Assembly (NCBI GenBank): GCA_038087875.1
Contig: CM075994.1
Span: 5,022,001 to 5,086,000, forward strand
Reading direction: 5' to 3'
DNA length: 64,000 nt
From: Malacoraja senta
Lineage: Eukaryota
Positions within the stretch are counted from its first letter, which is position 1. The number at the start of each line of letters is the position of its first letter. Below, one piece after another: positions 4,288 through 59,549 of this stretch. Under the pieces are notes generated by a model. The model was not told the DNA's origin, searched no databases, and saw only the letters and a program-made list of their open reading frames with translations. The translations under genes were made by a program, and so were the position numbers.

Positions 4288-4323
4288 CAATATCAGCAAA
4301 TGCTTTTTTCAGCCGGTCAGGTT
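4288..4323 (-). CDS. Candidate 36-nt phase-1 micro-exon (EPDRLKKAFADI)
   Basis: long pyrimidine tract ...cttcgttccctggaatag|AACCTGACCGGCTGAAAAAAGCATTTGCTGATATTG|gtgaga; clear paralogue of exon 29258. Confidence 0.75.
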
Positions 4324-6336
4324 CTATTCCAGGGAACGAAGCAGGAGAAGCAGAAATCTAAAAGTTAATCATTTTCAACATCGGATAAAGCTAGTTTTCA
4401 TATTGTTGGATGAGTAAGGGTTTGGAAGAAATGCAACCAATAAACAGTCAGTGACGACAAATATACTGATGAATGCTTCTGGGAAAGAATACAACTATAT
4501 TCGGCGGCAGTTGAGTTATGTAACGTTGAAGGACTGGGAGTTTGCATTCGAATTACTCTACGACCATTGGATTACAAGATCTTATTTTTACCTGCAGTTC
4601 TCGTGACAAAATAGATTATTTCTAAATGCACCAACAAAGAATGTCCTCTTATTGCTTTCAATACCATAATTAAATTCGCTATGGATATGCTGAAGTCAAA
4701 TGGTGGATGATCTAGTGGAAGAATGACTGTCATCTGGACATTTGATCAAAGGAAAATGTGAATTATTTCTTGGAATTGTCATCATGTGACACAAAATAGA
4801 AAAAAGCCGAGATAATTTAGAGAATTTGGAAGCAAATCAGTCTTTTTCTCCAAGCAACGATACGGCACTAACAAACAATTCAAAAGTAGTCGAATAAATC
4901 TTTTGACCCAACGAACATGAAACTAAGTATAGAAGGTACTATTGGCGGGGCACGCTTTGTAATTCAAAATAAATAAAATATGATACACCGTTAGCACAAT
5001 ATTCATTGGACATTTCTTATGACACTAAAGTAGGTGGTAACGTGGACAAAGAAGATAGTTATAAAAAATGTGTTCATCTGGGCAAATGGGCTCAGGATTA
5101 TATAAGAAAATGTAGATATATTGTATATTAATTAATGTCTGATATTGCTATCGCTAAATACTTTTCAGAGGACCAATGTGGATTACGACCTTATTCGACG
5201 TATATTACTGTTTTGGTAAAATATTCAGTGATGAATTGTATGAGCATGGCAACTGCATACGTCGTTATACTTTTTCATGTCACCTACTAAGATCATTTCA
5301 TATCCGCAAACACCACAGACGCACGCACGCACAAATGCAAACACATGCGTATAGGAAAAACACATATTGCAACTTTCTGGGTGGGGCACGAAATCTCAAA
5401 TTAGGTGAGAGATGCCACAAAATGCACGAAATATCCCACTAAATTCAATTTCCTGCGATAATCGCTGCTTAAAAAATGCCACAGCGTGGGTTAAAACATG
5501 TAGGTCTGCTGGCCATCATTTCCCACACAGACAGAATTACAACAATTGCTTTTTAGCGTCAAGATAACACACACTTATATTTTACCTTCAAGAAAAATAA
5601 GGGAAGTAACACGGTAATATCCTAGTGGCTCGTTTTTACTCTTGCTGTTTATGAGGATGTCGTTTTTTTTAATGAAAGCAAAATGAAGAGGAATTAATTG
5701 TGAAACAATTTACGTAACATGTAGTGGACTTGCTTTAGGGCGACAATGTTTCGTTATCTTACTTGAAGTTGACATTGTGGTGAACTTCAGCATCATTCTT
5801 CAAAGGAAAAACCATCTGCATATTTTCCCAAGATATTCACCAGCAAATTATTTATATAATATAGAGAAACCTATGAACGTGAAGAGTGGACATTAGTGAA
5901 ACATCACGGGAATACTGGCGCCCATAAATATATTTTCAGTTCCTACTTTCATGGCGTAGTCATTACTTTATATCAAGTGGTATGGATATTTTCGGTTTCA
6001 ACTTACATTTATAAAAAGGAGCACGATAAATATTAAAGTCAATGCGTCTCTAAAAGCACGAAACTTGTTTTCGCTTTAGGATCTCAAATTAGTCGCCAAA
6101 TGTTGTAAAGGATTTGAAATGATGAATGCTCCTCTTGTTATTTTGCAAAAGAGATTTCTCTTATTTTTAGACTGGTTTGATTTAATGTTGTACCTCGCTG
6201 GTTTTGCGCATGGTATAAAAGCACACCTCAAAAAAAAAAGCATCAATTTAGTCACACAGAATATAAATAATCTGCAGCAAAAGATGTGACATTTTGTTAC
6301 GAAGAACTGCCATCCTTTATATTGTTTAGAACATAC

Positions 6337-6354
6337 CTTTGACTCCACTCTTCC
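6337..6354 (-). CDS. Candidate 18-nt phase-1 micro-exon (GKSGVK)
   Basis: tttctttgatttgtag|GGAAGAGTGGAGTCAAAG|gtatgt; good splice signals but no similarity to the other exons. Confidence 0.5.
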
Positions 6355-7354
6355 CTACAAATCAAAGAAATATATATGTAATATATATTATTGTTTTAAT
6401 TGTTTTGAATAATTTATAGGATGATGGCAGGACTGCAGTTATACGTGACTTCTGACGTTGGTTTCATCGAGAAATTCCATTTAATTCCTTTCAACACATG
6501 ATCACAATTGATTGCTCCCAGTGTAAATGTTCAATTTTTCTTCTCCTTCCCCAAATTCTCTATTACACGCGCAGCAATCTTCTTACGGTAATATAATTGT
6601 ACATGCACTATTTGGTGAATGTAACATTTAAGCGATGTGCGCAGAATCTATTAGCCGAGTTTGATTTGGTCATTTACACAAATTAAGGATGGGATTTGTA
6701 TTCCAAACCATTTTCCTCGCAGGGAAGGGAACGATGTGAATGTTTACATGACACATCTCCTCAAGCCGAATTTACATCGCAAGAGTGGTGTTGGAGTACG
6801 TGAAGGAAAATAGAACCGTGAAAATGCAATATACAATCATGCAAACACCATTACACTGTATGCCGAAATCAGCGGAGATATTAATAGATGGGAGTAATCT
6901 GTAAAGTGCAAACCACATTTCTGGCCAGTTTATTTTTTCTTCCATAATAAGGCATTGTAAAACGTTCGACGGTTAATCTCCGTTTGTTTTTACCGTTCGG
7001 ATTCCGATATAAATACATTAACTCATCGTTGATTATACTTTACCTTATGTATTTCATTCATTATAACAGTAGCTAATAAAGTCAATGTCCACAGTAAGTG
7101 GGGAAGAATGCAAACGTTTGAAACAAAGGACTTGGTTTTGAAAAAAAAACATTTCGTCAAAGGTACACCTATGATGATATTCCTTTACGATATTTTCCGT
7201 TTTATTTCCCCTTGTTGCAGTGTTCTCAAAACTGTAACCAACATATATGTTAATTGTGAAAGTTGTGCGCTTCTATTACTTTCACATAGGTATGTGTAAA
7301 GGGTACGTTTCTCGAAGGTCCTAGAATGAACTGCCGCAATTGATTATGCTTTGC

Positions 7355-7563
7355 ATTTCCGGTAGTCCCTGCTGTCTCCTCCACTTCTCAGCTTTCCCTC
7401 AGCCCTCGAGCTACTCCTCTTCCTGTTTCCTTTCTTCTCCACGCCCCCCCCCCCCCACCCTCCATCAGTCTGAAGAAGGGTTTCGGCCGGAAACGTTGCC
7501 TATTTCCTTCGCTCCATAGATACTGCTGCACCCGCTGAGCTTCTCCAGCATTTTTGTCTACCT
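7355..7563 (+). mobile_element. Penelope-like terminal fragment
   Basis: Very similar to 1820-2012; contains ctgaagaagggtttcggccggaaacg. Confidence 0.75.
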
Positions 7564-7914
7564 TAAATGCTTTACCTTATTTTTCTTTGCACGTTTCCAG
7601 TTAAAATATTAGAGTTCAGAGGCCGACTGCCGAATTGTTATCCGGCAACAATGCACTGAAATGCATTGACTTCCTTCTTCTCGCTTCAACTGAGACCACA
7701 TCATTTATTACTTCTTATCCCAAATATCAGTGCTTTGCGCTATGTTAGCTGCGCAAGGACAACGTTGACGATGATAAAAAGGATGAGTTAAATTTATGCA
7801 ATTAATAATAGGGCACGAAACATATGACCATGTCACTTTTGAACAAAAACAATTCAACTTAGGTTATGAATTTCTTCTTGAACCATGCACTATTGTTCGG
7901 CAGGATTGGTTGTT

Positions 7915-22173: not shown

Positions 22174-22209
22174 CTGGTATTTTCATGTAATTTTTAATTG
22201 CATCAAGTT
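22174..22209 (-). CDS. Candidate 36-nt phase-1 micro-exon (ELDAIKNYMKIP)
   Basis: atatttattctcag|AACTTGATGCAATTAAAAATTACATGAAAATACCAG|gtcggt; acceptor and start resemble exon 37371. Confidence 0.65.
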
Positions 22210-22347
22210 CTGAGAATAAATATTACCAGAACAGTCAATATATTTCAACATTAAATTTCTAGTTTTGATATTCAGATTTTATATGATTTTTGTGGTTGAA
22301 GCGAACGAATGATTTTCAAGTTAATAATGAAAAAATATATACAATTA

Positions 22348-22488
22348 NNNNNNNNNNNNNNNNNNNNNNNNNNNNNNNNNNNNNNNNNNNNNNNNNNNNN
22401 NNNNNNNNNNNNNNNNNNNNNNNNNNNNNNNNNNNNNNNNNNNNNNNNNNNNNNNNNNNNNNNNNNNNNNNNNNNNNNNNNNNNNNNN
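22348..22488. other. Assembly gap
   Basis: Run of N. Confidence 1.
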
Positions 22489-23049
22489 TTTCTGAATGTG
22501 TATAGCCATGTTATGCAGCGCATGGGTAACTCGACTTGCAAACAGGACATGAATTGAGCTCTTCAACGAAATACTGCAAAATGTTGGATTATCCGAAAGA
22601 ACGCCAATACCGTTGCATGCAAACTATGACAACGATAATTTTCGTGAATCAAATGAATGTCAAGCGGGTGCCGTGTTGACTTCCTTTCTCACTTTTCGGC
22701 AGCAGTGTATTTCTATATAAATTGATGCCAAGGGGGGAAAATTAAAAGAAGTAGAATACCATAGATGTTTATACCTTATCTTCCTTCCCCTCCCACTTCC
22801 ACAAACACGCGCACTCGCAATACTCCCAATAATGTATGATAATATAAATATAAGTAATCCTCTGTATTAACATTTCTGCTAGCACATGAAACAACAGTGA
22901 CGGCACGGACAGTATTAATTAAACAACAAATAACTGGCGACAAGTTTCTCGTTTTAAACCAGGAATAATTTTACTTTCTCACCGACATCCAGGCGGTTGC
23001 CGTAAAATATTATACATCACAATAAGCATCAATTAATTAATTAATTAAG

Positions 23050-23110
23050 TTATTCATTCATTTATTTATTCATTCCATCATTCCATCATTCATTCATTCA
23101 TTCATTCATT
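23050..23110. repeat. (TCAT)n microsatellite
   Basis: Direct observation. Confidence 0.9.
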
Positions 23111-37305: not shown

Positions 37306-37370
37306 GCCGAAGTATTTGACTATGCTCTATGATGCGACGTGATTTTTATGTCAATAGAAATATGGCTTAC

Positions 37371-39773: not shown

Positions 39774-42700
39774 AATAGTAAGATTAAACGAGAACTTACC
39801 AGTTAGAAGTTCGTTCTTTATTTTATGAGGAGTAACGTTGAGGGATTATGTGAAGAAGACCCCGTCCAGCCGCTCACGCATCAATCTTCAAAGCAGCGGT
39901 GAAAATCACAGACGATAATTACTGAAGTATGATAGTAAGATGCATAAAGACTTACAACTACCAGCTCGATCATTTTATGAGGGTGGGAGCGGAGGGCACG
40001 TAATCCCTCAACGTTACTCCTCATAAAATAAAGATCAAACTTCAAACTGGTAAGTTCTCGTTTAATCTTACTATTTTACTTCGGAGTCACGTGAGTGACT
40101 ACGTGAAGATTTCAAAGCTCAGTGATTTCACACCGTGGATTAAAATCCAGGTGCTCACTGCACTGATTGACTCTATTGAGTAAGCACAATGAACAATGCA
40201 TAACCACAACATTAAATGTAATCAGTTGATGGTTTTATTTATTTGAACAAAAGCAACAAAATTAGGCCCATTTATTATAATGGGGGATTTAATACTGAAT
40301 CCAGCACGGCATCAACAAACAGCCCGAGATCTTTAATCTCCTTATGGTAATACGTGTGAAACATCTGTTCACTTGCCCATCCTGCGGCCGCGAGGATAAG
40401 GTCTATTGGCACGTCTGAATCCCTGGCCGCCGATGTTGATGCCGCCCTGGAGGAATGAGATTTAAATTTATCAATATCAATACCTGAATAAATCAACACC
40501 TGTTTCAGCCATCTTGAAATTGTCTGTGTTGACACTTTCTTATGAGGCTTTTTATGACTACTAAAAATTGCCAATTCTGTGCCTCTCAAGATTCTTGTTG
40601 TTTCTATGTAACATTTTACATATGTTACTACACATAGCCGTGGATCTGTAGGATATGCTAAAAACTCCAACTTACATCCCATGAACCCAGGTCTACTTTG
40701 CTTCAGCAAATCCTAGGCATAGAATGTAACGGCATTCGCCCCTACTTTCATTCTGTCAATTCTTAGTTTCTGTAATGTTTGAAGTCTCTGAGCTGAAGCT
40801 AATGCCATGAGCATAACCAATTTCATGGTGATTTTGGCTAATGACAGAGTTTCAATAGGATTCCAATCCCTCAGCAGCATCAGTACATTTTTTACATTCC
40901 AGATTTCTGTATAGCTAGTTCTAGGTGGATTGGAGTTAAAAATTCCTTTCATAAACCTACAGACCCAATGATGTGATCCTATTGGGTTTTGTTCTGATTC
41001 ACTGCTTACATATGCAGAGAGTGCACTTCGTGCAGTATTGATTGCACTATAATATAATTTTAATTCGTAGTAAAGAGTTGAAAGAAACTCTAATACATCT
41101 GAAATTTCTGCTGTGTTATATGCAATATTCTTTCCTGAACAAAACACCTCCCATTTCTTTATATAGGAAATGTACTATTCCTCCAGGCTGCTGTCATAAC
41201 ATCCACCGTACGATCAGATAATCCTTTTCCAAGATATGGCCTTCTTAGAATCTGCAAATCAACAAACCAATACGATCATGTAAAGGATGTGGTTCACCAG
41301 TCACAGGGTGTACAAGCAGTTTTATCTGCTTTGGAATAATCATAAGGCACTTTTTGATCATTTTTAACACCAGTCGGTACCATAGCTGTGTAGGCCAATC
41401 TGGTACTACCAAAATCCCTGAGGCTGAGTCTTGTTTAATTTTCTGTATGCATCTATTGATTAAACAAAGTGGTGGAAATGCATACAGAAACATACCACCC
41501 CAATGTAGAGATAAAACATCCACCGCTACTGCACCAGGATCAGGTTCCCATGACACATACTTAGGCAATTGGTGGTTTAGTCTTGATGCAAACAATCACC
41601 CTCTGGCATTCCAAATTGTGTTACAATTTGTGTAAATATTTCCTGATGTAACATCCATTCCGTAATATCATTAAATTTACGTGATCTTTTGTCTGCAATT
41701 ATGTTAAATTTTCCTGGTAAATATATTGCTGACACTCAAATGTTCCTGGCAATAGGCCAGGTCCAAATTTACTTTGCCAATCTATCACATGATTCTGATT
41801 TGATACTACCCATGTGATTTATGTATGCTACAGCTGTAGTATTGTCAACCTGTACCTGAACATGCACATTTCCCATAATAGTGCAATAAGCTTTAAGGCC
41901 ATATAATGCTCCTAACAGCTCTAGGTAATTGATCCCCTGATTTTCCAGCAAAGGTACTTCATTCACATTCCACCTACGTCCACAGCTGGAAATCATGTTA
42001 GTTGCGCCACATCCAAGAGCACTTATATCAGTCTGTAGAATGACGGAAGGTGTTTCTACCAGACCTTTTCTGGAAGCATTAGAGACATTGTTAATCCACC
42101 ATTCTATGTCTGTAATGGATCCAATTGTCAATTTCATGGGCCTGTCAAAATGCCATGTATTCATTTTTAATGCTTGTACCTTAGCCCTCTGCAAACATTG
42201 ATAATGCAATGGTCCAAACCTGACAGTTGGAAACCCAGCAATTAATTTGCCCAGCAAGCTTGCCACTTCTCTAATTGAAGGTGTGTCCTAGTTTATGAGT
42301 TTGTTGCAACCTTCAATTAACTGCAGCCTTTTCTCTTTTGGCAAGGTGATTAACATGTGTTCAGAGTTAATTCTGAACCCTAGGTAATCAATCTTCTTGC
42401 TTGGTAACAATTTAGATTTTTGTAGGTGAATAATGAAACCCATTTTTTCAAAAATGTACTTGACTCGAGATACTGACAATTTTGCAGTAGCCAAAGTGTC
42501 CCCTATAATCAGAATATCGTCTAAATAGGCCATTAGTACATGGCCCTCAGCTCTTAGCAGAGCTAAAATTGGTTTGAGTAATTTTGTGAATAATCTTTGT
42601 GCTGAAGTCAGGCCATTGGGCAATGCTTTAAATTGCCATAACTGACAACCATCTAAATTTCAAATATCTTTGATCATTACCATGCATTGCCACAGAATAT

Positions 42701-44883
42701 TATGCATCTTGCAGATCTATGCTTGCCATATAGGATTTTTTTTTTGTGATCAGCTGAATGGCATTAGTAAATGTTTCCATTTTGAAATGTTTGTATTGTA
42801 TATAAAGGTTAAGATTTGTCAGATCCAAAATGATTCTACACCCAACATCCTTTTTTGCTCTAGGTAAAATATTTGATACAAACTGATGGTGTTGTTCTAC
42901 TGACTTCTCTATTATCCCCTTTTTGCTTAAAGTTTCTAATTCTCCTTTGATCAACTTATTCTCTTCCTTTGAGAAAATCCGTGACCAGCTTGAATTTTGC
43001 TGAATTGGAGGATCCAAGTGTGGATAGAACTCAATTTTGAATCCTACAATGCTACTTATAATAAATGAATCATTTGTTATTAACTGCCATTTTTTTAGGA
43101 AGAATCGTAACCTCCCCCCTATTTGTGAATGTGAAACATTTGTTGTATTTCTTACCAGACCAGGACCCCCTACCTCGGGGTTTGCCACCGGCAAGTGTTG
43201 TCCCATTCTGGTAGGCATATTGGAACCTCCACTTATCCCCAGTGCAGCACGCCAACGTGAATGATCGGATTGTTCCTTCTCCAGCACCTGCATTCCGTCT
43301 GAAGGGATACTGCCTTCGCACCGCTCTGCTCAGCATCGGTGGTTTCATCATCATACCGCTCATGGTCTTTGACTCTTCATTCAAGTCTTTTAGTTTCTTT
43401 GCTAGATTTTCTGCAAACAGCAGATTAGGCATTTGTATGTTGGATGGTTTGCAGAGCCCTGCATACTTTGGATGAAAATTTGGTCTTATTGCATTTTTAC
43501 GAATACAATTTATTTCAAAGTGCGCACTACACATGAGTGCTAAGGATTCTTGTTGTGAATCTGATATGAAATCATCATCCAATCCCCTGGCAAACGCCCT
43601 AATGCCTGACCCCAGCAATTTCAGCACTCGTTGTAATTTCAATTCTTGTTAGCGTAAACCAATGCTCAAATAACCCCATATCAAGTTATTCACTGCTGGA
43701 AATGTTAGCAAGTCACAATTCGCCGGGGACTCATACTGTTTAATAGTCTCATCCATAGTTACTTCCTGGAGCTGATGGGAGAGAAGTTAATTTATAGTCA
43801 TTGCTATTTCCTCTCTGAAAGGTTCCCCTTTTATTCTGGGAACAGCAATCTTTTGTGCTAGTCCTGGAACTTTTAGCTCTGATAATGGGCTCTCATCCTC
43901 ATAGAAATCATCCTCTGAATCTAGATGTTCCTCTTCAGGTTGGGTAACTTCTGGCTGCCCTGTTTCAGGTAAGTCTATGCCAGATTCCCCTTGCGCAAGC
44001 TCTCTTATAGGCCCACGTATATGCAGCCCTGTCCCAGGTGCTGCTGGCGCTGGCTCAACTCTAGGCCAACGCTTCATAATTTTTTTCTTTTGAAATTGTC
44101 GGTGCTGGCACATTTGTACGTTTATACTGTCTTTATTCAGACATTTCTGGTACTGGCTCTCCAGTAGGCCTGTACATATATTGCCTTTTTGCTGGCATTT
44201 CTGGCACTGGCTCTCCTGTAGGCCAACCACTGTAATAGCTTTGCACAGGCATTTCTGATGGCTCTCCTGTAGGCCACCCTTGTGCTTGTCCCATCCAATG
44301 CACACCCTGTGCTATATCCTCCATTGGCCAACACCGACCTAAATCCTCCTGCGGGGGTTCTTTGTAAATCATTTTACCCATCAGGAGCTCTAAGCTAGCG
44401 ACCCTTGCAGCCATAACATTTTCTGCTTCAGGAGGGTATACCTGCGGGTGTGACTCTTCCGAGTCTACAGGTCGGGCCGACTTTTGTCCTGCCTTGCGCC
44501 CCGCCGCCGGCGGTTTAACGGCACATTAAACGGGAGTTAATGGCTTCGATGCCACTGACTCCTCTGACTGACGCCCGCTACCCTTAGAATCTGCGGTTTT
44601 ACCTGCGGTGCGTCCCTGGCCTCTCCTTCACCTACGCCCCTTTCCCATTGTAACTTGTGTGGACCTCTACCAACAAGTCTGAGCGGGAAGAAAAGCGCTC
44701 TGTAAGTGAAAGTGAAACCACTTACCTTCCGACTTTTACTTTAACTTTGCTTTACTCACCGCCTGGAGGAGCTCCTGCTCCTCCACACACGGTCATGAAC
44801 GCTATGCGTCTGATCGATATGACGCGTGTGCGGCTGGACGGGGTCTTCTTCACGTGATCACTCATGTGACTCCGACGTAAAAT
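39774..44883 (-). mobile_element. DIRS1-type retrotransposon, second subfamily, uninterrupted but degenerate
   Basis: ORF1, RT (YLDD), RNase H (INYLELL), methyltransferase-like (FASRLN..YAFPP), YR (HSSRAASTS); ICR at about 39995-40110; AAT at both ends. Confidence 0.96.
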
Positions 44884-47800
44884 TGATTTCCTTCAGTCCT
44901 TCAGTCTGTCCACTGACTGTAGACTATGATTTTACACATCACATTTTAACACAATAAAAGGACTTGTTTAACGACGAGTTGGGCGTGATGCCTGCCAGAT
45001 GCACAATTACAATTGACCCTTGGGCAATCCCAGTTGTTCGTCCAGCTCACAGGATTCCCCATGCTATGCGGGATCGAGTACAACGTGAACTTAACATAAT
45101 GGTGGCTGTTGGTATGATTACTCCCGTAACTGAACCCTCAGACTGGATCTTCTCAATGGTTGCCACTACTAAGAAGAATAAAGACGATATACGGATGTGT
45201 ATCAACCCTAAGGACATAAATACAACAATTAAGATACCACGTTATTCAATGCGTTCAGTGGACGAGATTGCGGCACAGGTGGCCGATGCAACTGTATTAG
45301 CAGTACTAGATGCCAATAATTCATTCTGGCAGATTCCACGGGCACATAAATCCTCCAAGCTGACAACTTTCAGTACACCGTTCGGACGATATACATTTTT
45401 GAGAATGTGCTTTGTTACAAGTCCTGCCATTGAAGTGTTTCAACAATCCATGGAGCAATTGTTTTCCGGATACCCATGCTCCATCGTAGTGGACAATATC
45501 CTCATTGCTGGGAAAACGATCGCGGAACACGACGCCAATGTGACCAAAAGTATTGAACGGGCCGATGCCATCCATCTCAAACTCAATCCTCAAAAAATAC
45601 AAATTCAGAGTGAATGAGATAAAATACCTAGGCCATATATTTACCAAGGACGGCCAGAAAACCTATCCATTGAAAACCAGTGCCATTAATGAACTCCCAG
45701 CACCCATTGACGTGCCCAACTTGCAGAGGTTCCTTGGCATGGCGAACTATTTGAGCAAATCCATTCCTGATTTCAGCGAAACGTCAGCCCCATTACGCCT
45801 TCTCACACACAAAGACACTGCTTGGTCCTGGCATAAACAACAACAGACAGCATTTGACACTTTTAAACGGCAGATGTCAGCCACCCCTACTCTAGCGTAC
45901 TTTGATCATAGACTGCGTGTTACACTTACATGTGACGCCTCACAACATGGCCTGGGCGCTGCATGCATTCTGAATGATGGCCATGGCAATAAGCCTGTCG
46001 CCTATGCCTCACACACCATGTCTGCACAGAACAACGATATGCCCAAATTGAAAATGAATTACTAGCGGTTGTTTTTGCCTGCACAAACTTCAACGATTTC
46101 ATCTTTGGTCGCACAGTTACAGTTGAAACCGACCACCATCCTCTTATCAGCATTTTCAACAAACCTATTCATAACTGTCTAGCGCGCCTACAACGGATGC
46201 TACTATAACTTCAAAAATATGACATTGTCCTCACCTACAAACGTGGAGAGGATATGCGCCTGGCAGACACTCTTTCACGTGCACCTCGGAAGACCTGCGA
46301 GGATCTGCCCTCACAGGATAATTAATTTATCGTGATGTCCGTATCATTCATCTCTTCATCATGTATGGAGGACTTAGGTGGCCACAATGCCACCGACAAG
46401 ACCCTACGGTCCCTGACTTATGTCTTTAAGCGCGGCTGGTCAGACAAGCACTACAACGTTCCTTTGCCAGTCCGACCTTTCTTCCCTGTTCGGGACGAAT
46501 TGGTGCTAGAACACGGGATTGTTTTAGAAGGACACCAAGCCGTGGTACCAGCTTCGTTGCATCACCGGTATTTCGACGCTGTTCATGCAGTACACCCAGG
46601 CGCTGAAGCCACTGTTTCACAGGCGAAAAGCTTGTATACTGACCTTGCATGGCCGAATACATAAACGACAATGTGGCAGAGTTCTGTGTGCAATAGCATG
46701 GCACATCATCAACAAAAGCAACCACTCTGCCACATTCTGTACCTGCACTCCCGTGGTCTACAGTGGCAGCTGATTTATTTGAGTGGCACGGCAAGCAGTA
46801 CCTGGTACTCGTGTTCGTATTCATGGTGGTTCGACTTTGATTTTCTGAGCAGCCCAACTTCCAGCGGCGTGATTATCTCGTCATTTTTTTAAACCATTGA
46901 TCTCCAGGCAAGCTGTTGACTGACAATGGCAGCCAGTTCACCAGCCAACAATTCAAAGAGTTTCCTAGACGATGGAATGTTCACCACATCACCAGCAGCC
47001 CTGAGTATGCAAAATCTAATGTGCTGACTGGACGGGCTGTCCGTATTGCGAAACAACACATGGAACGCTCTCACAGGGCCAAGTCTGACGTATTCCTAGA
47101 TTTGCTCAACTTACGCAACATTTCCCGTTACCCTGATTTGGGTTCCACTGGTCAACGATTATTGTCAAGACAGACCCGTACTACGTTGCCCGTCGCAGAA
47201 CAATCGTTAGTCCCACATGCCTTTCCACCTGAGGATGTTCAAACCAGGTTACGACAGAAGAGTGACATTCAAATAAATGGTTCGACAAGACGATCAGGCC
47301 CCTGCCACCATTGACCAAAGGACAGGTGGTCCGCTTACAGATGGACAAAAGTCATGAGCGTGTTGGAGCGATTTCTGGTCAAGCTTCGGAGCCACGCTCG
47401 TACATTGGTAGAGCCGATGGCGACACATACCGACTAAACATGCAACATCTCCAGCCTGTGAAGGAGCCAATCCCTCCACTCTATTCTCCGGATCGTACAA
47501 GTTCATTTCACTTTGCATCTGGTGGCCCTCACATGCTCTTGCCAACACAACAATCCATGCCTGTGACAGGTCCTCTGTCTGTCCTATCTTCGCCTGTGCC
47601 ACAGTCTCATGCTTCGACCCCAGAGGCGTTGGTCCACTCCCCAACTCTGAAATCACCAATTCTTTCCCCGGGGAAGAGGAATGGAGATTGCCTCATTCGT
47701 ACACGTGCCGTTCGTGTTAGCAGGCAGGTTGTGAAGTATCCGGACAATGTTTGACTTTACATACGTTTTCATCGGTTGTGATTTTTGCTTTGTTTAGTTA

Positions 47801-49419
47801 TGGGTATAGGGCTATTGATTCTTTAAGAGGGGGATGTAGGTCAGTGGCTCGTGCTATGTCATGCTTTTGTAGTTACGACCACCAGCTTATTAGCGTCGCG
47901 AGCTACTGTACTCCTCAGTATGAAGTTAACTCTCAAGTAAATGCTTGCAGTTGTTTATTATAAATAAACAGTGTATAACCTGCCAAGGCGTGAGGTCTTT
48001 ATTATTACAAGGAGTCCAAACCAACAAATATAGAAGAAATGAATGCAATATATGGAAAATAGTAATGATGATAAAGGAAATAGGCCGTTGCTAGCTGTTT
48101 GTTAGGTGAGAACGAGTACATACAATGAGACTCATCAAGGCAACTTTGAAGCTTGTACGACTTGCCTGGGGAAAAATGGAGAGAGAGGGAATACGTGGGG
48201 TTACTTGAAGTTAGATATATCAATATTCATATCACTAGGTTGTAAGCTGCCCAATCGAAATATGACATGTTGCGCCTCCAATTTGCGTTTCGCTTCACAC
48301 GGACAATGGAGGAGGCCGAGCACAGAAAGATCAGTGTTGGAATGGGAACGGGAATTAAACTATTTTGCAACCCGGAGATTAGGTAGGTCCAGACGGACTG
48401 AGCAAAAGTCTTCAACGAAACGATCGCACAATCTACATTTTCTATCTCCGATGTATACGAACTTTTAACAAGATGTTCCTATTCGGTAATCGTTTCGTTT
48501 ATATGCTCCATCCTTTTATATTCAGTTTGTTCGCTTTCTTCAATGATAAAACTGAGCTGAAGCACGAACTGAATGTTACATGATTCATGGTGTTACAGCG
48601 TGCAGGGGTTTCCAAGGTTGTGTGGCTCATATCCTTGAATGCCACCTAAGACATTAATTTATGACCAGTTATACATCTTTTTTGCAGATTAGCCGCGTTT
48701 ATGTGAAAACGCTATTTTGAAAACAAAATATTGACCCTTATCAGGTCGTGTGCTCCAGAATAAGTGTGTTTTATTCAAATAAATAATTTGAACAACAAAC
48801 ATAGCCAGCAAGAAATTTATCTCAGTAAATCAATGCCTGTCCCGCTGAGTTACTCCTGCGTTGTGATTATCTCAGACAAAGAAATGGACACGTTAATCTT
48901 GTATCCTGTAACTAGGGAAAGCGAGGTACTGCGGAGCAGGTAGCGAAGCTCCTGCCCTACAGCTCTAGCGACCAATGTCCAATCCATCTCAACGTTGTCT
49001 GCTTCTCTAAGGTTAAGATTAAACAGAATATGTCAGCAAAAATGTAGTTGTCAATTAAATTAGCAGCATCACGTTTCAAACCCTGTTCAGGAAATAAGTA
49101 GATGTTTTCGAAGACTGCTTAAGCGAACTCCGAGGAACCAGTAAATCATGAGGCCAACTGCGAAGTCACCAAGATAAGCTTTACCTTCCCATAGACATCC
49201 GATGCTAACTCGGCGTCTGATCGGGCACATACCTCACGGCATTATGGTAATAAAGGGAATAGTATGTTTGACACTAAGCCGCGAGTTGTTCTTACAGATA
49301 AATGTTATTAAATAACTGCACGCATCTACCATGAGAGCGCGAGTATCACCTAACAGAGATAGAAAATAGTGTCACCTTCGGGAGTAGAAATGAGCTTCAC
49401 CTTCCGTGAGAGAAATCGT

Positions 49420-49600
49420 NNNNNNNNNNNNNNNNNNNNNNNNNNNNNNNNNNNNNNNNNNNNNNNNNNNNNNNNNNNNNNNNNNNNNNNNNNNNNNNNN
49501 NNNNNNNNNNNNNNNNNNNNNNNNNNNNNNNNNNNNNNNNNNNNNNNNNNNNNNNNNNNNNNNNNNNNNNNNNNNNNNNNNNNNNNNNNNNNNNNNNNNN
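49420..49600. other. Assembly gap
   Basis: Run of N. Confidence 1.
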
Positions 49601-50899
49601 TGGAGTGATCGAGCGAGAGAGACGGGACGACCGACCGCAGACATGTAGATAGTCACGCAAATTCATCCAGTAAGTGGTCAGTGGGTACAAACTGGCTCGG
49701 TGCACAAATACATTTTAATTAAATCATTATTTTGCAATAGAATGACATTTGTTACATTTTCTCCTAACTGGTTCGCCTGCCAACATTTTTATAAAATACC
49801 CACATGAGTTTGTTTTCGTGATTTACGGACAGAATACACATTCGTGATATTTTTAGCAGCATAGATCTCAACATCTGAAACTGGATGTCAATGGAACCAA
49901 ACTATAAAGTTATTTTACTTTTACGTTTATTCTCATCTGCTGCTAGGGATAAGCAGGGTGTGTTGATAAGCCTTAATCCCTCCGCGTTTTATCACTGCAA
50001 TCTCTTTGCTCTAATCTTTGTCAAGTTATCTTGTTAATTTTATAGTATAGTAAGATAAGTGCAGGTGATTATTTATATTGATCTCGGAAAAATAGCAGTA
50101 AGTGGGGTACCATCATATTAATCTTGCAAATGAGTGCTGTTTATTTGCAACTATTCAATTACATTACACACGGAGTCTTCAGTTCTTTTTTCACAATCGA
50201 AATCATGCTTTTTCCCTTTAGCTCTTTACTTCAAAACTCCCTTCTGATTTAGCTTCAGCGGACTGGTGAATTAGTAGAACATGGGAATAACTTAGAAAGT
50301 GTGTACGAAATCCATAGTTGTTCCATACAGATGAACAGACGTCCCTCAAAGAACCTTAATATTATCCTGTCTAAAATCGATTGATTTGAATGGAAACCAG
50401 CACAAAGATAAATGGAAATTTCAGTACCAGCTTACATCCAAGGTGCCGTGCTTCTAACCAATTGTCAAATCGGTTAATTTGAGTTACATGGTGATACATA
50501 TTGGCCTACAAAAGTGAATGTATCACAGAACAATATATCGGAAGTCATCGGCCCATGCAGCATCATATTTAACTCAGGGTCCCAAGCTAAGGAATACAAT
50601 TGATTTGTATGTTTCCTCACGTGGAAATTAATAGAAAGTGAGGCTTCGGGAGAAGGTTCTGGGCTCCCAAACTGACCCCCAATAGAAAAAGACAACGGCT
50701 GAACCTTTTGCAGTAGAAATTCTGCACTCCAATCTATCCACAATTATGTTCATCAAAACATAATCTCTGTTCGCGCTTAAAGTGACTGTTGTTTCGAATA
50801 AAAACAACTGATTTTACAATACACTAGTTATACGTACGATAGGCTTTTCAACACAATACCCGACAAGCACAATGAACTATGGAGTACAACTACTACGTT

Positions 50900-53800
50900 A
50901 GAAAAACCACCAACAATGGAGGTGGCGTGGTAGTCTGACGCGCTGACCTCTACCGTACTGAGACCAGGCGACAACTCTCAGACTCCACTACCTATATATC
51001 CTTGGACATTGACCGCCACAGACGAGCACCAGAACTTAATATCACGTACCATTTCTGATTGTATTACTTCCGGCTCTCTGCCATTTAAAGCTTCCAACCT
51101 TATCGTCTCCAAGCCCCGCACGGCCTGATTTTATGTTCTCCCCAAAATCCACAAACAGAATTGTCCATGCAGACACATTGTTTCTGCGTGTTCTTGTCCC
51201 ACCGATTTATTTCCTCACACGTGGAAGTCTTCCTACCCACCATTGTACAATCCCTCCCTCCCTATGTCCGTCACCTCACACGCTCTACGTTTCTTCAACA
51301 ACTTACATTTTCCAGGCTCCCTCTCCTACATCTTTAGCATGGATGTCCAGTCAATCTACAAGTCCATCCACCACCAGGATGGTCTAACTGCACACTGTTT
51401 CTTCTTTGACGGCAGAACCCGCCCAGTTCCGTCTCCCAATACACTTCTCCGCCCAGCAGAGCTGGTCCTAAACCACAACAACATATCCTTCGACTCCAAT
51501 CACTTCCTCCAAATGCAAGGCGTAGATATGGGCACTCGCGTGGGTCCCAGATATAACTGCCTCTTTGTAAGGTAGGAAAAAAATCACAGTTCCAAAAGTA
51601 CACTGCTCCTATCCCGGAACTCTACTTCCGCTACAATGACGATCGCATCGGCGCTGCCTCCTGCACCCATGCAGAACACGCTAATTTAATCATCCTTCAT
51701 TGTTCTGTATCCCAATGTTCTATCGATTCAGGATCAATTGATGTGTATTTGAGTGTAGCTAATGTTATCCCATCTTTTAAGAAAGGAGAGAGAAAATAGG
51801 AAATTATAAATTAGTTAGCCTGATATCGGTGGTGGGGAAGATGCTGGAGTCAATTGTAAAATATGAAATAGCGGCACATTTGGATAGCAGTAACAGGATC
51901 GGTTCGAGTCAGCAGGGATATACGAAGGGGAAATCATGCTTGACTAAGTTTCTGGAAGTATATGAGGATGTAATTAGGGAAATGGACAAGTCCACTGTGG
52001 ATGTAGTGGACCTGGACTTTCAGAAAACACTTGATAAGTTCCCACATAGGAGATTAGTGGGCAGAATTAGAGTACTTGGTATTGGGGGTAGGGAACTGAC
52101 ATGGATAGAAAATTGGTTGGCAGACAGGAAACAAAGATTAGGGATTAACGGGTCCCTTTCAGAATATCAAGCAGTGACAAGTGGGGTATCGTAAGGATCG
52201 ATGCAGGAAACGCAGCTATTTACAATATACATCAACGATTTAGATGAAGGGATTCAAACTAACATTAGCAAATATGCAGGTGCCACAAAGCTAGGTGGCA
52301 GTTTGAACAACGAGGAGGATGCTATGAGGATGCAGGTTAACGTGGACAGGTTGGTGCGTGGGCCGACGCATGGCAGATGCAGTTTTGTGTGGATATCCAC
52401 ATAGGTCGCAAAACAGGAAGGCAGATTATTAACACAATGGTGTCAAGGTTGGAAAAGGGGGAGTGAACAGAGATCTGGGGGGGCTTTTGTTGATCATTCA
52501 CTGAAAGTAACCATGCAGGTACAGCAGACAGTGAGGAAAGCTCATGGTATGTTGGCCTTCATAACTAGCCGAGTTGAGTATATGAGCAAAGAGGTCCGTC
52601 TGCGGTTGTACAGCGCCCTGCTGAGATCACACCTGGAGTATTGTGTGCAATTCTTGTCTCCAAATATGAGGAAGGACATTCTTACTATTGAGGGAGTGCA
52701 GCGTGGGTTCACGGGGTTAATTCCCGGGATGGCGGGTCTGCTATATATGGATAGAATGGAGCGGCTGGGCTTGTATACTCTGGAATGTAGAAGGATTAGA
52801 GGGTATCTTATTGAAACGTATAAGGTTATTAAGGGGTTAGACACGCTGGAGGCAGCAAACATGTTCCCGGCGTTAGGGGATTCCAGAACCAGGGTGCACA
52901 GCTTAAGAATGGGGGGTTGGCCATTTAGAACGGAGATGAGGAAAGTTGTAAATCTGTAGAACTTGCTGCTTCAGCAAGCAGTGGAGGCCAATTCTCAGGA
53001 TGCTTTCAAGCGAAAACTCGATAGAGCTCTTTAATATAGTTTAGCCAGAGGATGTGGAGAGAAGGCAGGAACGGGTTACATTATGTAGATGATCAGCCAT
53101 GATCACAGTAAATGGCGTTTCTGGCTCGAAGTGCCGAATGGCGTACTCCTGCAGCTATTGTCTATTGTCTATTGTCTATTGTCGAATATTTTTCATCCAG
53201 CACTCAAATTCACTTGGACCATATCGGACATCTCCTTACCATATCCGGATCTCACCGTCTCCGTCGCAGGAGGCAGACTATTAACCGACATCTACTACAA
53301 GCCTGACTTCCATAGCTGTCGTGATTACAAGTCTTCCCACACTGCTTTCTGTAAGTCTCTATCCCCTACTCCCAGTTCCTCCGTCCACGTCGTATCTGTG
53401 CCCAGGATGAGATTTTCCGTACTAAATCATCAGAGATGTGCTCATTCCACAGGAAACGGGCTTCCCCTTTTCCATTATAGATGAGGCACTAAGTAGGTTT
53501 TACTCGATATCACGCAGCTCCGTTCTTGTTTCCCCTCCCCCCATTAGCAACTTGAACAGAGTCCCCATTGTCATCACCTTCCATCCAATCACTTACAGCA
53601 TATAATCCTCCAAAACATTCGCCACCGACAACGGGATCGCACTGCTGGCCACATCTTCACATCTCCACCCATTTCTGCTTTCCGCCAAGACCGTTCCTTC
53701 CGCGTCTCCCTAGTCAACTCGTCCCTTCCCACAAAAAAAACAATACCTACCCAGGCACTGCAGGAAATGCAACACCTGTCCCATTATATCCCCCGCTCGA

Positions 53801-54272
53801 CTCCGTCCAAAGACCCAGACCGTCTTTTCAGTTGCAGCAGAGGTTCACGCACGTCCTGCAACCTCGTCTACTGTATTGTCTGTTCTAGCAGTCAACATAT
53901 GTACATCGTCGAAACTGAATGCAACCTCATCTCCCGGTTGCTCAGCACGTTAAATCCAGCGCCCATTCCCAATCTGTCATTTCTGGCCAGTTGGAGGAAC
54001 ATCACCTCATATTTCTCTTTGGTAGCTTACACCCCAGCGGTATGAACTTTGATTTCTCTAACTTCAAGTAACGCTTGCATTCCATCTCTCTCCATCCCCA
54101 TCGCTCTTCCCAGAACTGCCAGCAGTATTACTGTCTTAGACGACATTCTATCTCTGTGCCGCCCACTCCCCAAATATCAGTCTGAAGAAGGGTCTCGACC
54201 AACATTGTCACTCATCCCTTCTATCCAGAGATGCTGCCTGTCCTCGCTGAGTTACTCCAGCATTTTGTGTTT
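50900..54272 (+). mobile_element. Penelope-like element (RT plus GIY-YIG), degenerate, split by a CR1
   Basis: LPKIHK, MDVQSIY, QGVDMG, YNDD; after the CR1, FHPALKFTW and NLVYCIVC..HMYIVET; tail tcagtctgaagaagggtctcgacc. Confidence 0.85.
51712..53182 (+). mobile_element. CR1 LINE, 5'-truncated, degenerate
   Basis: ORFs 51829-52194 and 52513-52959; (tctattg)n tail at about 53155-53182. Confidence 0.93.
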
Positions 54273-55282
54273 ACTATGTTACAAAATTCTGCACAAGGAT
54301 ATTCTCAAGGATTATATTTCTAAGCAAAAAATTGGAAGATAATTAATCCAGAGTGGATCCTGTTTGAATATGAGATAAATAACGTCGGAATAAGTAGTTT
54401 GCAACAAAATGTTGGGGTTACTTTATGTCGACCCGGTCAAGTGTATGCCAGAACATCGGGGAAAGCAGAGATAAATAATCTGGACACTGGTAGTTCTATT
54501 TATGTCAACGATAATTGCAGATAAGGCGCCGTAAGCCTGGAGGGTGGCTAACGTTTTCGCTCATTTTAAGAATAACTGCACTGGAAAGCTTGACCACAAC
54601 ATAGCGGTGAACTTAACATCAGTGTTTGTTAATTTTCGGAGCGAATTTCGAGAGACAGGTCGAATTTGCGATAGACAGCATTGCATTCCTCGTTTATCAG
54701 GAGGTTCATTACATATATTGAAATAGTGATCAAGAACATTGAAGATGGTAATCTGGTATAAGTTGCTCTTTGGATTTCAGCACGGTCCTTTCCAGAGCTT
54801 GGAATGTTAGGTTTCATTGAATCCAGGGCGAGCTTTTGCAAATGTATATTTCGTAACTGAACTTCTACAATCCCCTTTAAGTTGCTTGCAGTCTTAAACA
54901 ATAATTATGGTAGAAGAGACGTAACGCACATTATTCTTTAGAAATGTTCGAACCCGTATGTATAACGGTTGCATTAACCACGTGACAACACAAGTTAAAA
55001 TCAAGAAATAGTCACATATCTGTTTACTTTTGTTTCTTAGAAAACGTACCAATCCACGAATCTAATTACAGCCTTCGCATGAAAAACTGTTTTCCTCTTT
55101 TATTCGACTTAATCATATCCAAGAGCTATATATTTGGTGCATACAGATGTGTGCAAGCTGCCCTGAAATTGGTCCGGACGTTGCGTTCTGTTACATTTTC
55201 AACGACACAACATGTATTTCACTGAACCACGGGAAATATGAAAACGGTACAAACGGTACAAACGGTTTAGGAAACAACACGT

Positions 55283-57460
55283 TTAGAAACATAGAAACAG
55301 AAAATATGTGCAGGAGGAGGCCATTCGGCAACTCGAGCCAGCACCGCCATTCATTGTGAAATGGCTGATCGTCCCCAATCAATGCCCCGTGCCTGCCTTC
55401 TCCCAAGATACCTTGATTCCACAAGCCCATAGAGCTCGATATAACTCTCTTTTAAATCCATCCAGTGATTTGGCCTCCACTTCCCTCTGTGGCAGGGAAT
55501 TTCACAAATTCACAACTCTCAGTCTTAAATGGCCTCCCCTTTATTCTAAGACTGTGGCCCCTGATTCTGGCCTCGCCCAATATTGGGAAAACATTTCCTG
55601 CATCCAACTTGTCCAGTCCATTTATAATAGTATATGTTTCTATCAGACCCCCCTCATCCTTCTAAACTCCAGTGAATACAAGCCTAGTCTTTTAAATATT
55701 CCTCATATGAGAGTCCCGCCATCAGAGGGATCAATCTCGTGAACCTACGCTGCACTGCCTCAATCACAAAGATGACCTTCCTCAAATTAAGATACCAAAC
55801 TGTACACAATACTCCAGATGCTGTCTTACCAGAGCTCTACACAACTGCAGAAGAATCTCTCTACTCCTATACTGAAATCCTCTTGTAATGACATTCCGTT
55901 AGCTTTCTTCACCGCCTGCTGCACCTGCACGCCAACTTTCAGTGACCGGTGTACAAGGACACCCTGGTCTCGCTCTACCACCCCCTAATCTAACCTAACC
56001 CCATTGAGATAATAATCTCCCCCCTTGTTTTTGCCACTAAAGTGGATAACCTCACATGTATCTATATTATACTGCACATGCCACTCATCTGCCAACACAC
56101 CCAACCTATCTAGGTCACCTTGCTACCTCCTAACATCCTCTTCACAGTTCACACTGCCGCCCAGCTTTGTGTCATCTGCAAATTTGCTGGTAGTGCTCCG
56201 AAATCCCTCTTCCAAACCATTAATATATATGGTAAACAGTTGCGCCCCAACACCGAACCTTGCGGCACTACACACGCAACTACCTGCCATTCTGTAAAGG
56301 ACCCGTTTACTCCTACTATTTACCTCCTGTCTGCCTACCAATTTACTATCCACGTCAACACCCTACCCGCAACATCATGTGCTCTAATGGTAGTCACCCT
56401 TCTCCCATGCGGGACCTTATCATAAAGTCTAGATACACTACATCCACTGGCTCCCCTTCATCCATTTTGCTTGTCACATCCTCAAAAAATTCCAGAAGGT
56501 TAGTCAAGCATGATTTTCCTTTCCTAAATCCACGCTGACTTGGACTAATCATTTTACTGCTATCCAAATGCCCCATTATTACCTCTTTAGTAATTGACTC
56601 CAGCATCTTTCCCACCACCAAAGTCAGGCTAACTTGTCTGTAATTCCCCGTTTTCTCTCTCGCTCCTTTCTTGAAAAGTGGTATAACATTAGATATCCTC
56701 CAATCCACAGGAACTGATACTGAATCTATTGAATATTGGAAAATGATAACCAGTGCGTCCACTATTTCTAGAGCCACCTCCCAGAGGACACCGGTATGCA
56801 GACCATCAGGCCCAGGGGATTTATGATCCTTCAGTCCCATTAGCCTACCCAATACTATTTCTCGCCTAATGATGATTTATATCAGTTCCTCGACCCCCTT
56901 TGATCCTCTGTCCTCCAGCACTTCTGGGAGACTGTTTGTGTCTTCCCCAGTGAAGACAGATCCAAATTATCCGTTCATCTCCTCTGCCATTTCCTTGTTC
57001 CCTAAAATAATTTCACCCATGTCTGCCTTCAAGGGACCCACATTTCATTTTGCCATCGTTTTCCCTTAACTTATCTAAAGAAGCTTTTAATGTCCTTCTT
57101 TATATTCCTGGCCAGCTTCCCCTCGTTCTCTTTTCAGCCCGTATTGCCCGTTCTGTTTTCTTCTGTTGTCCTATGAAGTTTCCCCAATCCTCTGGCTTCC
57201 GACTACTCTTTGATGTGTTATACATCTTTTCTTTTAATTTCATTTTATCCCTAACTTCTCTTGTCAGCCACGGTTGCCTCCTACTCCCATATCAATCTTT
57301 CTTCTTCTCAAATTGCAGATTAAAACTATTCATATTATGATCACTACCACCAAGCGTTTATTTTACCTCGAGTTCTCTTATCAAATATGTTTCATTGGAT
57401 AACACTAAATCCAGAATTGCCTTTTCTTTTGTCGGCCCCATTACAATCTGCTCTCAGAAT
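55283..57460 (-). mobile_element. CR1 LINE, 5'-truncated, degenerate
   Basis: ORFs 56394-56852 and 56123-56353; tagaaacatagaaac tail; same subfamily as 7915-10090. Confidence 0.95.
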
Positions 57461-57711
57461 CCAAGCTTTAACATGCAGATCTGCTCGACAGAACATTGCT
57501 AAAGTTGATCAGTGATTTTTCAGGAATTTACGTCTGCGAGAAATATTTCAGAAATATGTGATATTTGTGTTTAAATAAAGCTGAGCAAGCATTATAAATT
57601 ATCGAAAGTGGCAGCAAACAATCCTATATGTGATGCCCATCCCGAATCTCTGTGTGTGTGCGCGTGCGTCTCTATGTGAATGTATGTGTCCGTGTGTCTT
57701 TTCAGGTGTAA

Positions 57712-58882
57712 AGGCTCTGTCTTAAGGCTCTGTCTTACCTGTTTGCGGTCATCGGCGGTGAAGCGCGGCGTCGCCGGTAGCGAGGACCGCGCGGCAACGG
57801 CGAGAGCGTCGAGCCTATCCACCGGAGCGCCGCACGGATGCTGCGCGGGGGCCGAGTTAATTCAAACACGGCGGGTCCCACGTGCTTGCGGTAAGTAAAT
57901 AAAAGGGCGGGCCGACTGCGATGACGTCGGCCCGCCGCACGTGACTCACCAGCGGCGGCTGTGGCGGCGGCCATCCTGATCGCGGCGCTGTAGCGGTGGC
58001 TGTGCCTGCGGCCGTGCAGCACACGTGCCTCACTGGTGGCGGCACGTGCCTCACTGGCGGAGGCTGTGGCAGTGGAGGATTGACGCACGGCGCTCGAGCC
58101 ACACTGGCGGCGGCCCGTGCGTGCGGCCGTGCCGCACTTGTGCATCACTGGTGGAGGTTGTGCGGTGAGTATTTGGTTTTCGACATTGTCGATTTTATTT
58201 TAGCACCGCGCGGTGTTGGGAACACCGCCGCACGACCCGGGAATTGTACGTTCTGACGAGTGCGCGGTCTATGGCGGCAGATTCTTCCCGTTTCGCCGCC
58301 AATGACCGCAGACTCGTGAGACAGGCCTTTTACCTGTTTGCGGTCATCGGCGGTGAAGCGCGGCGTCGCCGGTAGCGGGGACCGCGCGGCAACGGCGAGA
58401 GCGTCGAGCCTATCCACCGGAGAGCCGCACGGATGCTGCGCGGGGGCCGAGTTAATTCAAACACGGCGGGTCCCACGTACTGCGGTAAGTAAAAAAAAGG
58501 GCGGGCCGACTGCGATGACGGCGGCTGTGGCGGCGGCCATCCTGATCGCGGCGCTGTAGAGGTGGCTGTACCTGCGGCCGTGCAGCACACGTGCCTCACT
58601 AGCGGCGGCACGTGCCTCACTGGCGGAGGCTGTGGCAGTGGAGGTTTGACGCACGGCGCTCGAGCCACACTGGCGGCGGCCCGTGCGGGCGGCCGTGCCG
58701 CACTCGTGCATCACTGGTGGAGGTTGTGCGGTGAGTATATAGTTTTCGACATTGTCGATTTTATTTTAGCACCGTGCGGTGTTGGGAACACCGCCGCACG
58801 GCCCGGGAATTGTACGTTCTCACGAGTGCGCGGTCTATGGCGGCAGATTCTTCCCGTATCGCAGACTCGTGAGACAGGCCTT
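57712..58882. mobile_element. Harbinger-type MITE copy 2 (host: 57712-57724 plus 58333-58882)
   Basis: TAA TSD at 57709-57711 and 58883-58885; sequence matches 39012-39606. Confidence 0.8.
57725..58329. mobile_element. Harbinger-type MITE copy 3, nested in the TIR of copy 2
   Basis: TTA TSD at 57722-57724 and 58330-58332; both termini intact. Confidence 0.8.
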
Positions 58883-58904
58883 TAAGTCTATATATTCTTC
58901 TGTA

Positions 58905-59171
58905 NNNNNNNNNNNNNNNNNNNNNNNNNNNNNNNNNNNNNNNNNNNNNNNNNNNNNNNNNNNNNNNNNNNNNNNNNNNNNNNNNNNNNNNNNNNNNNNN
59001 NNNNNNNNNNNNNNNNNNNNNNNNNNNNNNNNNNNNNNNNNNNNNNNNNNNNNNNNNNNNNNNNNNNNNNNNNNNNNNNNNNNNNNNNNNNNNNNNNNNN
59101 NNNNNNNNNNNNNNNNNNNNNNNNNNNNNNNNNNNNNNNNNNNNNNNNNNNNNNNNNNNNNNNNNNNNNNN
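58905..59171. other. Assembly gap
   Basis: Run of N, flanked by GA-rich low-complexity sequence. Confidence 1.
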
Positions 59172-59285
59172 AGGGAGTGGGAGAGAGAGATAGATAGAGA
59201 GAGAGGGGGTGGAGGGAGGGAGTATAGGAGTGTGAGAGAGAGTTTTTTTTAGGTGACAGAAGAAATATTCGTATCAGTTGTCTAC

Positions 59286-59312
59286 CTGTTTCCTTCTGTC
59301 TCAGTTTCTCTT
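59286..59312 (-). CDS. Candidate 27-nt phase-1 micro-exon (QEKLRQKET)
   Basis: ttgacag|AAGAGAAACTGAGACAGAAGGAAACAG|gtagac; peptide resembles exons at 36118 and 23203. Confidence 0.7.
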
Positions 59313-59513
59313 CTGTCAACGCAAATTTGTTACAAAATGACTTGAGATTTATATGATAAAGTGACATCTGAAGCAAAGTGTGACAAAATTAACTTGACCA
59401 CTTTAGAATAAGGCTGTTGTTTATTTTCGGCTAATCGGTTGTTTTGTAAAGGTGATGCATTCAGAAAAATATAATTATCATTGTTTCATGCAACATGATC
59501 TTTGAAAACTTAC

Positions 59514-59549
59514 GTGTATCTTTGAGATTTTTTGCGCAATCGCCACTTC
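59514..59549 (-). CDS. Candidate 36-nt phase-1 micro-exon of host coiled-coil gene (xSGDCAKNLKDT)
   Basis: Minus strand tttctcttgtacgttgcag|GAAGTGGCGATTGCGCAAAAAATCTCAAAGATACAC|gtaagt: polypyrimidine tract, AG, consensus GTAAGT donor, 36 nt, open in phase 1. Confidence 0.7.

Follow-up and report, generated by a model that had tools for sequence, protein, structure and literature searches.

Eleven very short segments on the minus strand of a 64,000-nucleotide (nt) stretch of DNA from the skate Malacoraja senta (assembly GCA_038087875.1, contig CM075994.1, positions 5,022,001-5,086,000; this whole stretch is called the window below, and all further positions refer to it) are probably true exons, which make up the middle part of a gene for a coiled-coil protein. 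The current model consists of 11 exons of 18-36 nt, which are spread over approximately 55 kb and together comprise 324 nt encoding 107 residues. As predicted from the DNA, the segments have the properties expected of coding micro-exons that belong to a single transcription unit on the minus strand. This proposal, made in an initial annotation of the window, withstood null tests based on exon chaining, candidate ranking, and hydrophobic periodicity. The gene runs on past the start of the window, beyond the exon at position 4288.

Exon Structure of the Locus

Direct reading of the letters confirmed ten segments where the initial annotation had placed them on the minus strand, each with AG before and GT after it and with lengths of 36, 27, 36, 27, 36, 18, 27, 27, 36, and 36 nt. 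In most cases the acceptor is rich in pyrimidines and the donor reads GTAAG or GTGAG. When the first nine are joined in genomic order and read in phase 1, they yield 270 nt and 89 amino acids (aa) with zero stop codons, and the alternative frames of the same joined DNA contain 7 and 6 stops. The length of every one of the 11 exons in the current model is divisible by 9 nt, as had been claimed for the first ten; likewise, the exons proved to be symmetric (phase 1-1), and every intron is in phase 1. The alternation of 36-nt (A-type) and 27-nt (B-type) exons, also noted earlier, was recovered and equals 21 residues or three heptads. With exon lengths appended, the order of the exons is A36-B27 / A36-B27 / A36-B18 / A27-B27 / A36 / hinge18 / A36. 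The junctions lie mostly within a split Glu or Asp codon (G/AA, G/AG, or G/AT), and the introns measure, in order, 201, 21,879, 1,226, 6,824, 1,057, 1,668, 3,258, 993, 15,819, and 2,013 nt.

The eleventh segment, an 18-nt exon at 6337-6354, surfaced when candidates were ranked without restricting their lengths to multiples of 9. It has the best acceptor of all eleven exons, and its combined splice score is second, behind that of the exon at 36118. Through this exon the segment at 4288, which had been left unconnected, is joined in frame to the exon at 22174. The spliced join reads ..NYMKIP-GKSGVK-EPDRLKKAFADI and keeps the phase.

Tests Against Chance

Composition is a poor guide to such exons. 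Counts of Glu/Lys-rich AG..GT segments that considered composition only did not separate the minus strand (17) from the plus strand (19) or from shuffled sequences (18.6 ± 4.9); thus, A-rich DNA alone yields many such peptides. The null proposed in the initial annotation was to count phase-1-open AG-N(18/27/36)-GT segments on the plus strand and in shuffles as well. The raw counts, with 443 segments on the minus strand and approximately 440 per strand, are alike, but the minus strand stands apart once the segments are scored for splice sites and heptads. Eleven minus-strand segments then score at least 4.5; the plus strand has 4 such segments, and shuffles have 1.1 ± 1.0 (maximum 4). Six score at least 6.5, as opposed to 0 for the plus strand and 0.13 for shuffles. 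The exons of the model hold ranks 1-6, 8, 9, and 11-13 among the 443 minus-strand candidates, and the two other candidates within the top 13 (at 32284 and 12447) both lie inside transposons.

The strands were also separated by a chain test, in which dynamic programming joined phase-1 exons in a continuous heptad register and scored their splice sites together with the hydrophobicity of the a and d positions. Block-wise Markov shuffles (n = 60), which kept the local dinucleotide content, corrected for the freedom of choice inherent in such a search. The top chain on the minus strand scored 29.0, compared with 7.5 for the plus strand; the shuffles gave 4.2 ± 2.2 (maximum 9.4), and the ranking was unchanged under stricter per-exon penalties. 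The product also has a period-3.5 hydrophobic power of 1.91 vs. 0.18 for shuffled residues (p ≤ 2e-4), and the continuity of the register distinguishes the genomic exon order from permuted orders (p = 0.008).

A coding signature was found in one pair of paralogous exons. The exons at 29258 and 4288 have the stretch -LKKA[LF]ADI in common and encode it with different codons. In the claimed frame, 9.2 synonymous and 5.8 non-synonymous changes separate the two (pS 1.17, pN 0.23); the corresponding values in the other frames are 0.58/0.45 and 0.32/0.48, with no synonymous excess. Being confined to one pair out of ten, this excess gives modest support. The duplications that gave rise to the exons appear to be old, because the flanking introns are mutually dissimilar.

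Predicted Protein and Its Architecture

The predicted product is a heptad-periodic, Lys/Glu-rich helix, as the initial annotation had suggested and the periodicity test corroborated. The heptad register persists over the exon junctions: the a positions are occupied by L, L, F, V, L, V, L, L, and L in nine consecutive heptads that span seven junctions. A-type exons follow the pattern E-[FVL]-x-x-L-x-K-x-[VLF]-x-x-[MI] and B-type exons the pattern E-x-K-L-x-x-K-x-x. Of the six a/d core positions in a 21-residue cassette, five carry hydrophobic residues, and the sixth, a d position, carries Lys, Gln, or Thr. The two shortened cassettes contribute 18 + 18 = 36 residues (35 + 1), which shifts the register by one residue. 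Among the 107 residues are 22 K, 14 E, 9 D, and 4 R (46% charged) and one Cys, and the product contains no N-x-S/T site. Collagen-like Gly-X-Y runs were seen only in the exon at 6337, where the motif occurs twice (G-K-S-G-V-K); the remainder is heptad sequence.

We infer that splicing joins the exons in vivo and that their product is a parallel coiled coil containing a skip and a hinge. The locus would represent one protein-coding gene with at least 11 symmetric micro-exons of 18, 27, or 36 nt, separated by retrotransposon-filled introns of 0.2 to 22 kb. Its basic unit would be a two-exon cassette of A (36 nt, 12 aa) and B (27 nt, 9 aa), giving 21 residues or three heptads, and the spliced product would fold as a parallel alpha-helical coiled-coil rod with one Cys near its start. 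Two cassettes, each cut to 18 residues (9 + 9 nt shorter), would introduce a skip of one residue in the register. Further on, a Pro/Gly hinge (..KIP-GKSGVK-EP..) would interrupt the rod and be followed by a second helical segment.

The rod was probably built by cassette duplication. With all exons symmetric, the frame and the register survive the duplication, loss, or skipping of entire cassettes, and such events are the likely origin of the architecture and may also cause variation in rod length. The rod itself is most likely only one part, a tail or stalk, of a larger protein, and the membrane or globular parts of that protein would lie outside the window. Because so many residues are charged and N-glycosylation sites are lacking, we lean toward an intracellular rod, which might be a BG-like cytoplasmic tail or part of a cytoskeletal protein.

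Individual Exons

All exons are encoded on the minus strand and are numbered in the order of the model; ranks refer to the 443 candidates. Exon 1 (59514-59549) is a 36-nt A-type exon in phase 1-1, which encodes (R/G)SGDCAKNLKDT with the sole Cys of the product and is flanked by ttgcag and gtaagt (acceptor score 6.7, donor score 4.4; rank 12). The following 201-nt intron leads to exon 2 (59286-59312), a purine-rich 27-nt B-type exon that encodes QEKLRQKET between gacag and gtagac, with weak splice scores of -0.9 and 1.0 and rank 13. Exon 3 (37371-37406; A-type, 36 nt) encodes EFDELEKTVKAM, lies between tttctcag and gtaagc, and ranks first of 2323 as well as first of 443. Exon 4 (36118-36144; B-type, 27 nt) encodes EKKLIEKAQ and has the donor gtgagt with a score of 8.4 (rank 4), and exon 5 (29258-29293; A-type, 36 nt) encodes EVHTLKKALADI and holds rank 3.

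Three exons at single-copy depth come next. Exon 6 (28183-28200) is a shortened B-type exon of 18 nt, which encodes TKELRE between ttttgcag and gtaaaa (rank 6), and exon 7 (26488-26514) is a shortened A-type exon of 27 nt that encodes DIKKLRTDV (rank 2). Exon 8 (23203-23229; B-type, 27 nt; rank 11) encodes EESFKQTKQ and has a weak acceptor (-3.1) and the donor gtaacg (3.2). In exon 9 (22174-22209; A-type, 36 nt; rank 9), which lies between ttattctcag and gtcggt and encodes ELDAIKNYMKIP, a Pro residue ends the helix. Exon 10 (6337-6354; 18 nt, phase 1-1), the one added here, encodes the Gly-containing hinge G-K-S-G-V-K; its sequence GGAAGAGTGGAGTCAAAG is preceded by tttctttgatttgtag and followed by gtatgt, with splice scores of 6.9 and 5.8. 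Exon 11 (4288-4323; A-type, 36 nt; rank 5), again at single-copy depth, encodes EPDRLKKAFADI, which would open the second helical segment, and is flanked by ccctggaatag and gtgaga. A longer version of this exon that starts from the upstream acceptor tttag/ATTTC was rejected: it has 70 nt and a stop.

Genomic Setting

Read depth equals the single-copy background over all five exons checked, namely exons 6, 7, 8, 10, and 11, the value for exon 10 stemming from only one (X2) of the two runs that hold the locus. In the other run, X1, reads are almost absent at 6287-6448, a hole that in itself proves nothing. Within the window, no second copy of any of the 11 exons with their 250-nt flanks was found. 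In the contig graph of both runs, breaks occur on either side of a 37-nt piece (4301-4337) that has approximately twice the depth of its neighbors. This pattern is expected for branch points near 4300, the first base of a Phe codon in exon 11, and near 4338 in the intron; the branching may reflect heterozygous sites or shared words.

Three assembly gaps (runs of N) interrupt the locus. One (22348-22488) is located in the intron between exons 8 and 9, 138 nt from the acceptor, and two (49420-49600 and 58905-59171) are located in the 21.9-kb intron between exons 2 and 3, the latter at a distance of 115 nt from the donor of exon 2. Because all three gaps are intronic, the reading frame does not depend on their length. 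An additional hidden exon may lie inside a gap. The order and orientation of the exons are argued to be right, because the A36/B27 alternation and the heptad register are unbroken over the three gaps. A repeat unit of approximately 540 nt occurs once at 39006-39530 and as a tandem pair at 57719-58252 and 58314-58818, its copies being 67-97% identical. The tandem pair directly precedes the gap at 58905 and may be its cause.

The introns carry long interspersed nuclear elements (LINEs) and long terminal repeat (LTR) elements. A complete-looking LTR element of the Ty3/gypsy type on the minus strand (30779-35340) lies inside intron 4 and contains open reading frames (ORFs) with protease, reverse transcriptase, RNase H, and integrase domains. 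Its LTRs (30779-31143 and 34977-35340) are 99% identical; the element appears to have inserted recently and is oriented like the host gene. LINE reverse transcriptases are encoded at 8137-9117 and 15854-17524, and several transposon pairs in the introns share roughly 80% identity. Three pairs of transposon copies (8137-9953/56043-57304, 11197-12818/40282-41938, and 18215-19975/42034-43977; 78-86% identical) keep the same order in introns 9 and 2, a pattern that points either to two insertions of one composite element or to an old duplication of a segment of intron DNA. The region 23750-25750 is a very high-copy repeat, whose summed word depth reaches 10^5 to 3x10^6 compared with approximately 25 in the single-copy flanks; its genomic copies show many internal joints and indels. 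A plus-strand ORF of 200 aa in this repeat (24845-25447) has no Pfam hit.

Rejected Candidates and Neighboring Domains

Several other segments resemble exons of this gene. The candidates at 43357-43410, 42311, and 18491 were rejected as parts of a transposon that recurs at 18.2-20 kb. The first of them is a good example of a false micro-exon: this 54-nt segment has AG and GT bounds and a convincing coiled-coil-like peptide, NLAKKLKDLNEESKTMS, and its second copy at 19297-19477 contains stops. Also discarded were 32284-32319, which lies inside the LTR element of intron 4, 12447-12482, which lies inside a repeated element, and the candidates at 48124-48165, 1129-1152, and 105-143, whose length class or composition does not fit and whose splice sites are poor. 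Two putative transmembrane segments (62966-63028 and 3502-3573) are without fitting splice sites.

The initial annotation had stated that neither the start of the gene nor any globular domain is evident in the window, and a search confirmed this. Upstream of the model, the minus strand of 59550-64000 (4.4 kb, largely a reverse-transcriptase element) contains neither an IgV pattern nor a convincing transmembrane exon. Downstream of exon 11, no B30.2 motif or long open exon was found in the window, which the gene leaves at this end. The WIGL and WxWxDG motifs of C-type lectins were not found on the minus strand, of which 4.3 kb lie downstream within the window.

Alternative Explanations

Three other explanations of the segments were considered. 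The simplest is that AG..GT-bounded open segments were hand-picked from A-rich DNA, whose translation is naturally rich in Lys and Glu. The composition-only count, which fails to distinguish minus, plus, and shuffled sequence, and the approximately 440 phase-1-open segments of the right lengths on each strand are in line with such a chance origin. This is nevertheless highly improbable and already close to refuted, as shuffled chains score no more than 9.4 against the observed 29.0, shuffles give at most four segments that score 4.5 against the observed 11, and both the register continuity (p = 0.008) and the periodicity (p ≤ 2e-4) are hard to reconcile with it. Moreover, exon 10 was found without the length criterion of the initial annotation and still fits the phase. 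An interpretation that accepts the exons and divides them between two units (59514..22174 and 6337..4288 onward), either adjacent paralogues or alternative transcripts, would account for the 15.8-kb transposon-filled interval between exons 9 and 10, for the end of the helix at the Pro of exon 9, and for the paralogue-like nature of exon 11, which is close to exon 5. Yet a search revealed neither a terminal exon nor a stop codon or polyadenylation-type end after exon 9 and no first exon before exon 10, the phase is carried through exon 10, and strand and cassette type are alike on both sides. We regard such a division as rather improbable. Finally, the locus might be a relic, the remains of an unexpressed or decaying micro-exon coiled-coil gene such as a dead paralogue of a gene family. 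This would agree with a locus that is known from DNA runs without exon-exon joints, with introns that are heavily invaded by transposons including the young LTR element with its 99% identical LTRs, with the weakness of some splice sites, and with a window that contains neither a first nor a last exon. However, the open frame, the AG/GT bounds, and the heptad register are intact in 11 of 11 exons, and with so many short exons decay would soon break at least one of them; transposon-filled introns, in turn, are normal for large skate genes. A relic thus seems unlikely.

Several points also weigh against the preferred interpretation, namely that the segments are true exons of one coiled-coil gene. 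The acceptors of exons 2 and 8 and the donor of exon 5 are weak splice sites, and the matrices used for splice and heptad scoring are home-made approximations. Apart from exons 5 and 11, the paralogous exon pairs are saturated and yield no signal in the ratio of non-synonymous to synonymous substitutions (dN/dS). No start, end, transmembrane exon, or globular-domain exon was found in the window. The spliced peptide of 89 aa has no homologue among proteins of 49-156 aa; the search covered proteins whose length is 0.55 to 1.75 times that of the query, so that longer relatives were out of its reach. Both runs that contain the locus are DNA of the same skate species without exon-exon joints (they were judged to be DNA because their depth is flat over exons and introns and such joints are lacking), and the model is based on the DNA of one genome.

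Implications and Comparison with Known Systems

In this locus the exon structure matches the periodicity of the protein: an exon pair corresponds to three heptads, the introns are in phase 1, and the junctions fall on Glu or Asp codons. It would thus be a natural example of long coiled coils that grow by cassette duplication, and of a skip residue and a hinge that can be encoded as exon variants. If the cassette reading is true, rod length could be tuned through the duplication or skipping of cassettes. Tentatively, skates and rays may possess an undescribed family of rod proteins built from 63-nt (36 + 27) three-heptad cassettes, an independent vertebrate invention in which exon cassettes set the length, the skips (as an 18 + 18-residue pair), and the hinges. 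Gene finders and standard RNA-seq aligners are almost blind to exons of 18-36 nt that are scattered among kilobases of transposons, and genes like this one are probably missing or truncated in skate annotations.

By analogy, the cytoplasmic tail of chicken BG proteins appears to be the closest documented counterpart. These tails are encoded by 13 to 36 tiny exons of 21 or 24 nt, whose number varies among paralogues (PMC4046983). Like the heptad exons of butyrophilins, they resemble the skate locus in that a long alpha-helical coiled coil is specified by tiny exons with codons split at the junctions. In BG, however, each exon of 21 (24) nt encodes one heptad, whereas the exons of the skate locus have 36, 27, or 18 nt, none has 21 or 24, and the unit of three heptads takes a pair of 36 + 27 nt. 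BG introns are short, in contrast to the 0.2 to 22 kb observed here, and mammalian butyrophilins have only a few heptad exons. The stalk of human CD23 (FCER2) consists of 21-residue repeats, with one exon per repeat. This neck, like that of other type II C-type lectin receptors, forms a coiled coil of heptad repeats through which the receptor oligomerises (PMC6791321), and both this type of helix and the 21-residue period recur in the skate locus. There, however, the 21-residue unit is divided over two exons (36 + 27 nt), and the peptide is more highly charged (46%), lacks N-x-S/T sites, and fits an extracellular stalk less well.

Two further systems share formal features with the locus. Micro-exon genes (MEGs) of Schistosoma have exons of 3-81 bp and introns of up to 5 kb (PMC10526429), and to this extent they are similar in consisting almost wholly of very short symmetric exons with long introns between them. 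These trematode genes encode small secreted proteins that are largely disordered and have no heptad periodicity, and they have no evolutionary link to the skate locus. Collagen-like genes also have exon lengths that are multiples of 9, but the sequence encoded here is of the heptad and not of the Gly-X-Y type. A literature search for a gene with 36/27-nt cassettes in cartilaginous fish retrieved only the BG, CD23, and schistosome MEG analogues, and membership of the skate gene in the BG/butyrophilin, CD23, or MEG families is not established by these resemblances; exons for the domains that define such families, if the gene has any, would be located beyond the window. If the proposed family of rod proteins exists, the design of one structural period per exon unit that is known from chicken BG tails would have been invented independently in this lineage. 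If the rod turns out to belong to a membrane receptor, as its tail or stalk, a design of the BG/butyrophilin or CD23 type would be pushed back to cartilaginous fish.

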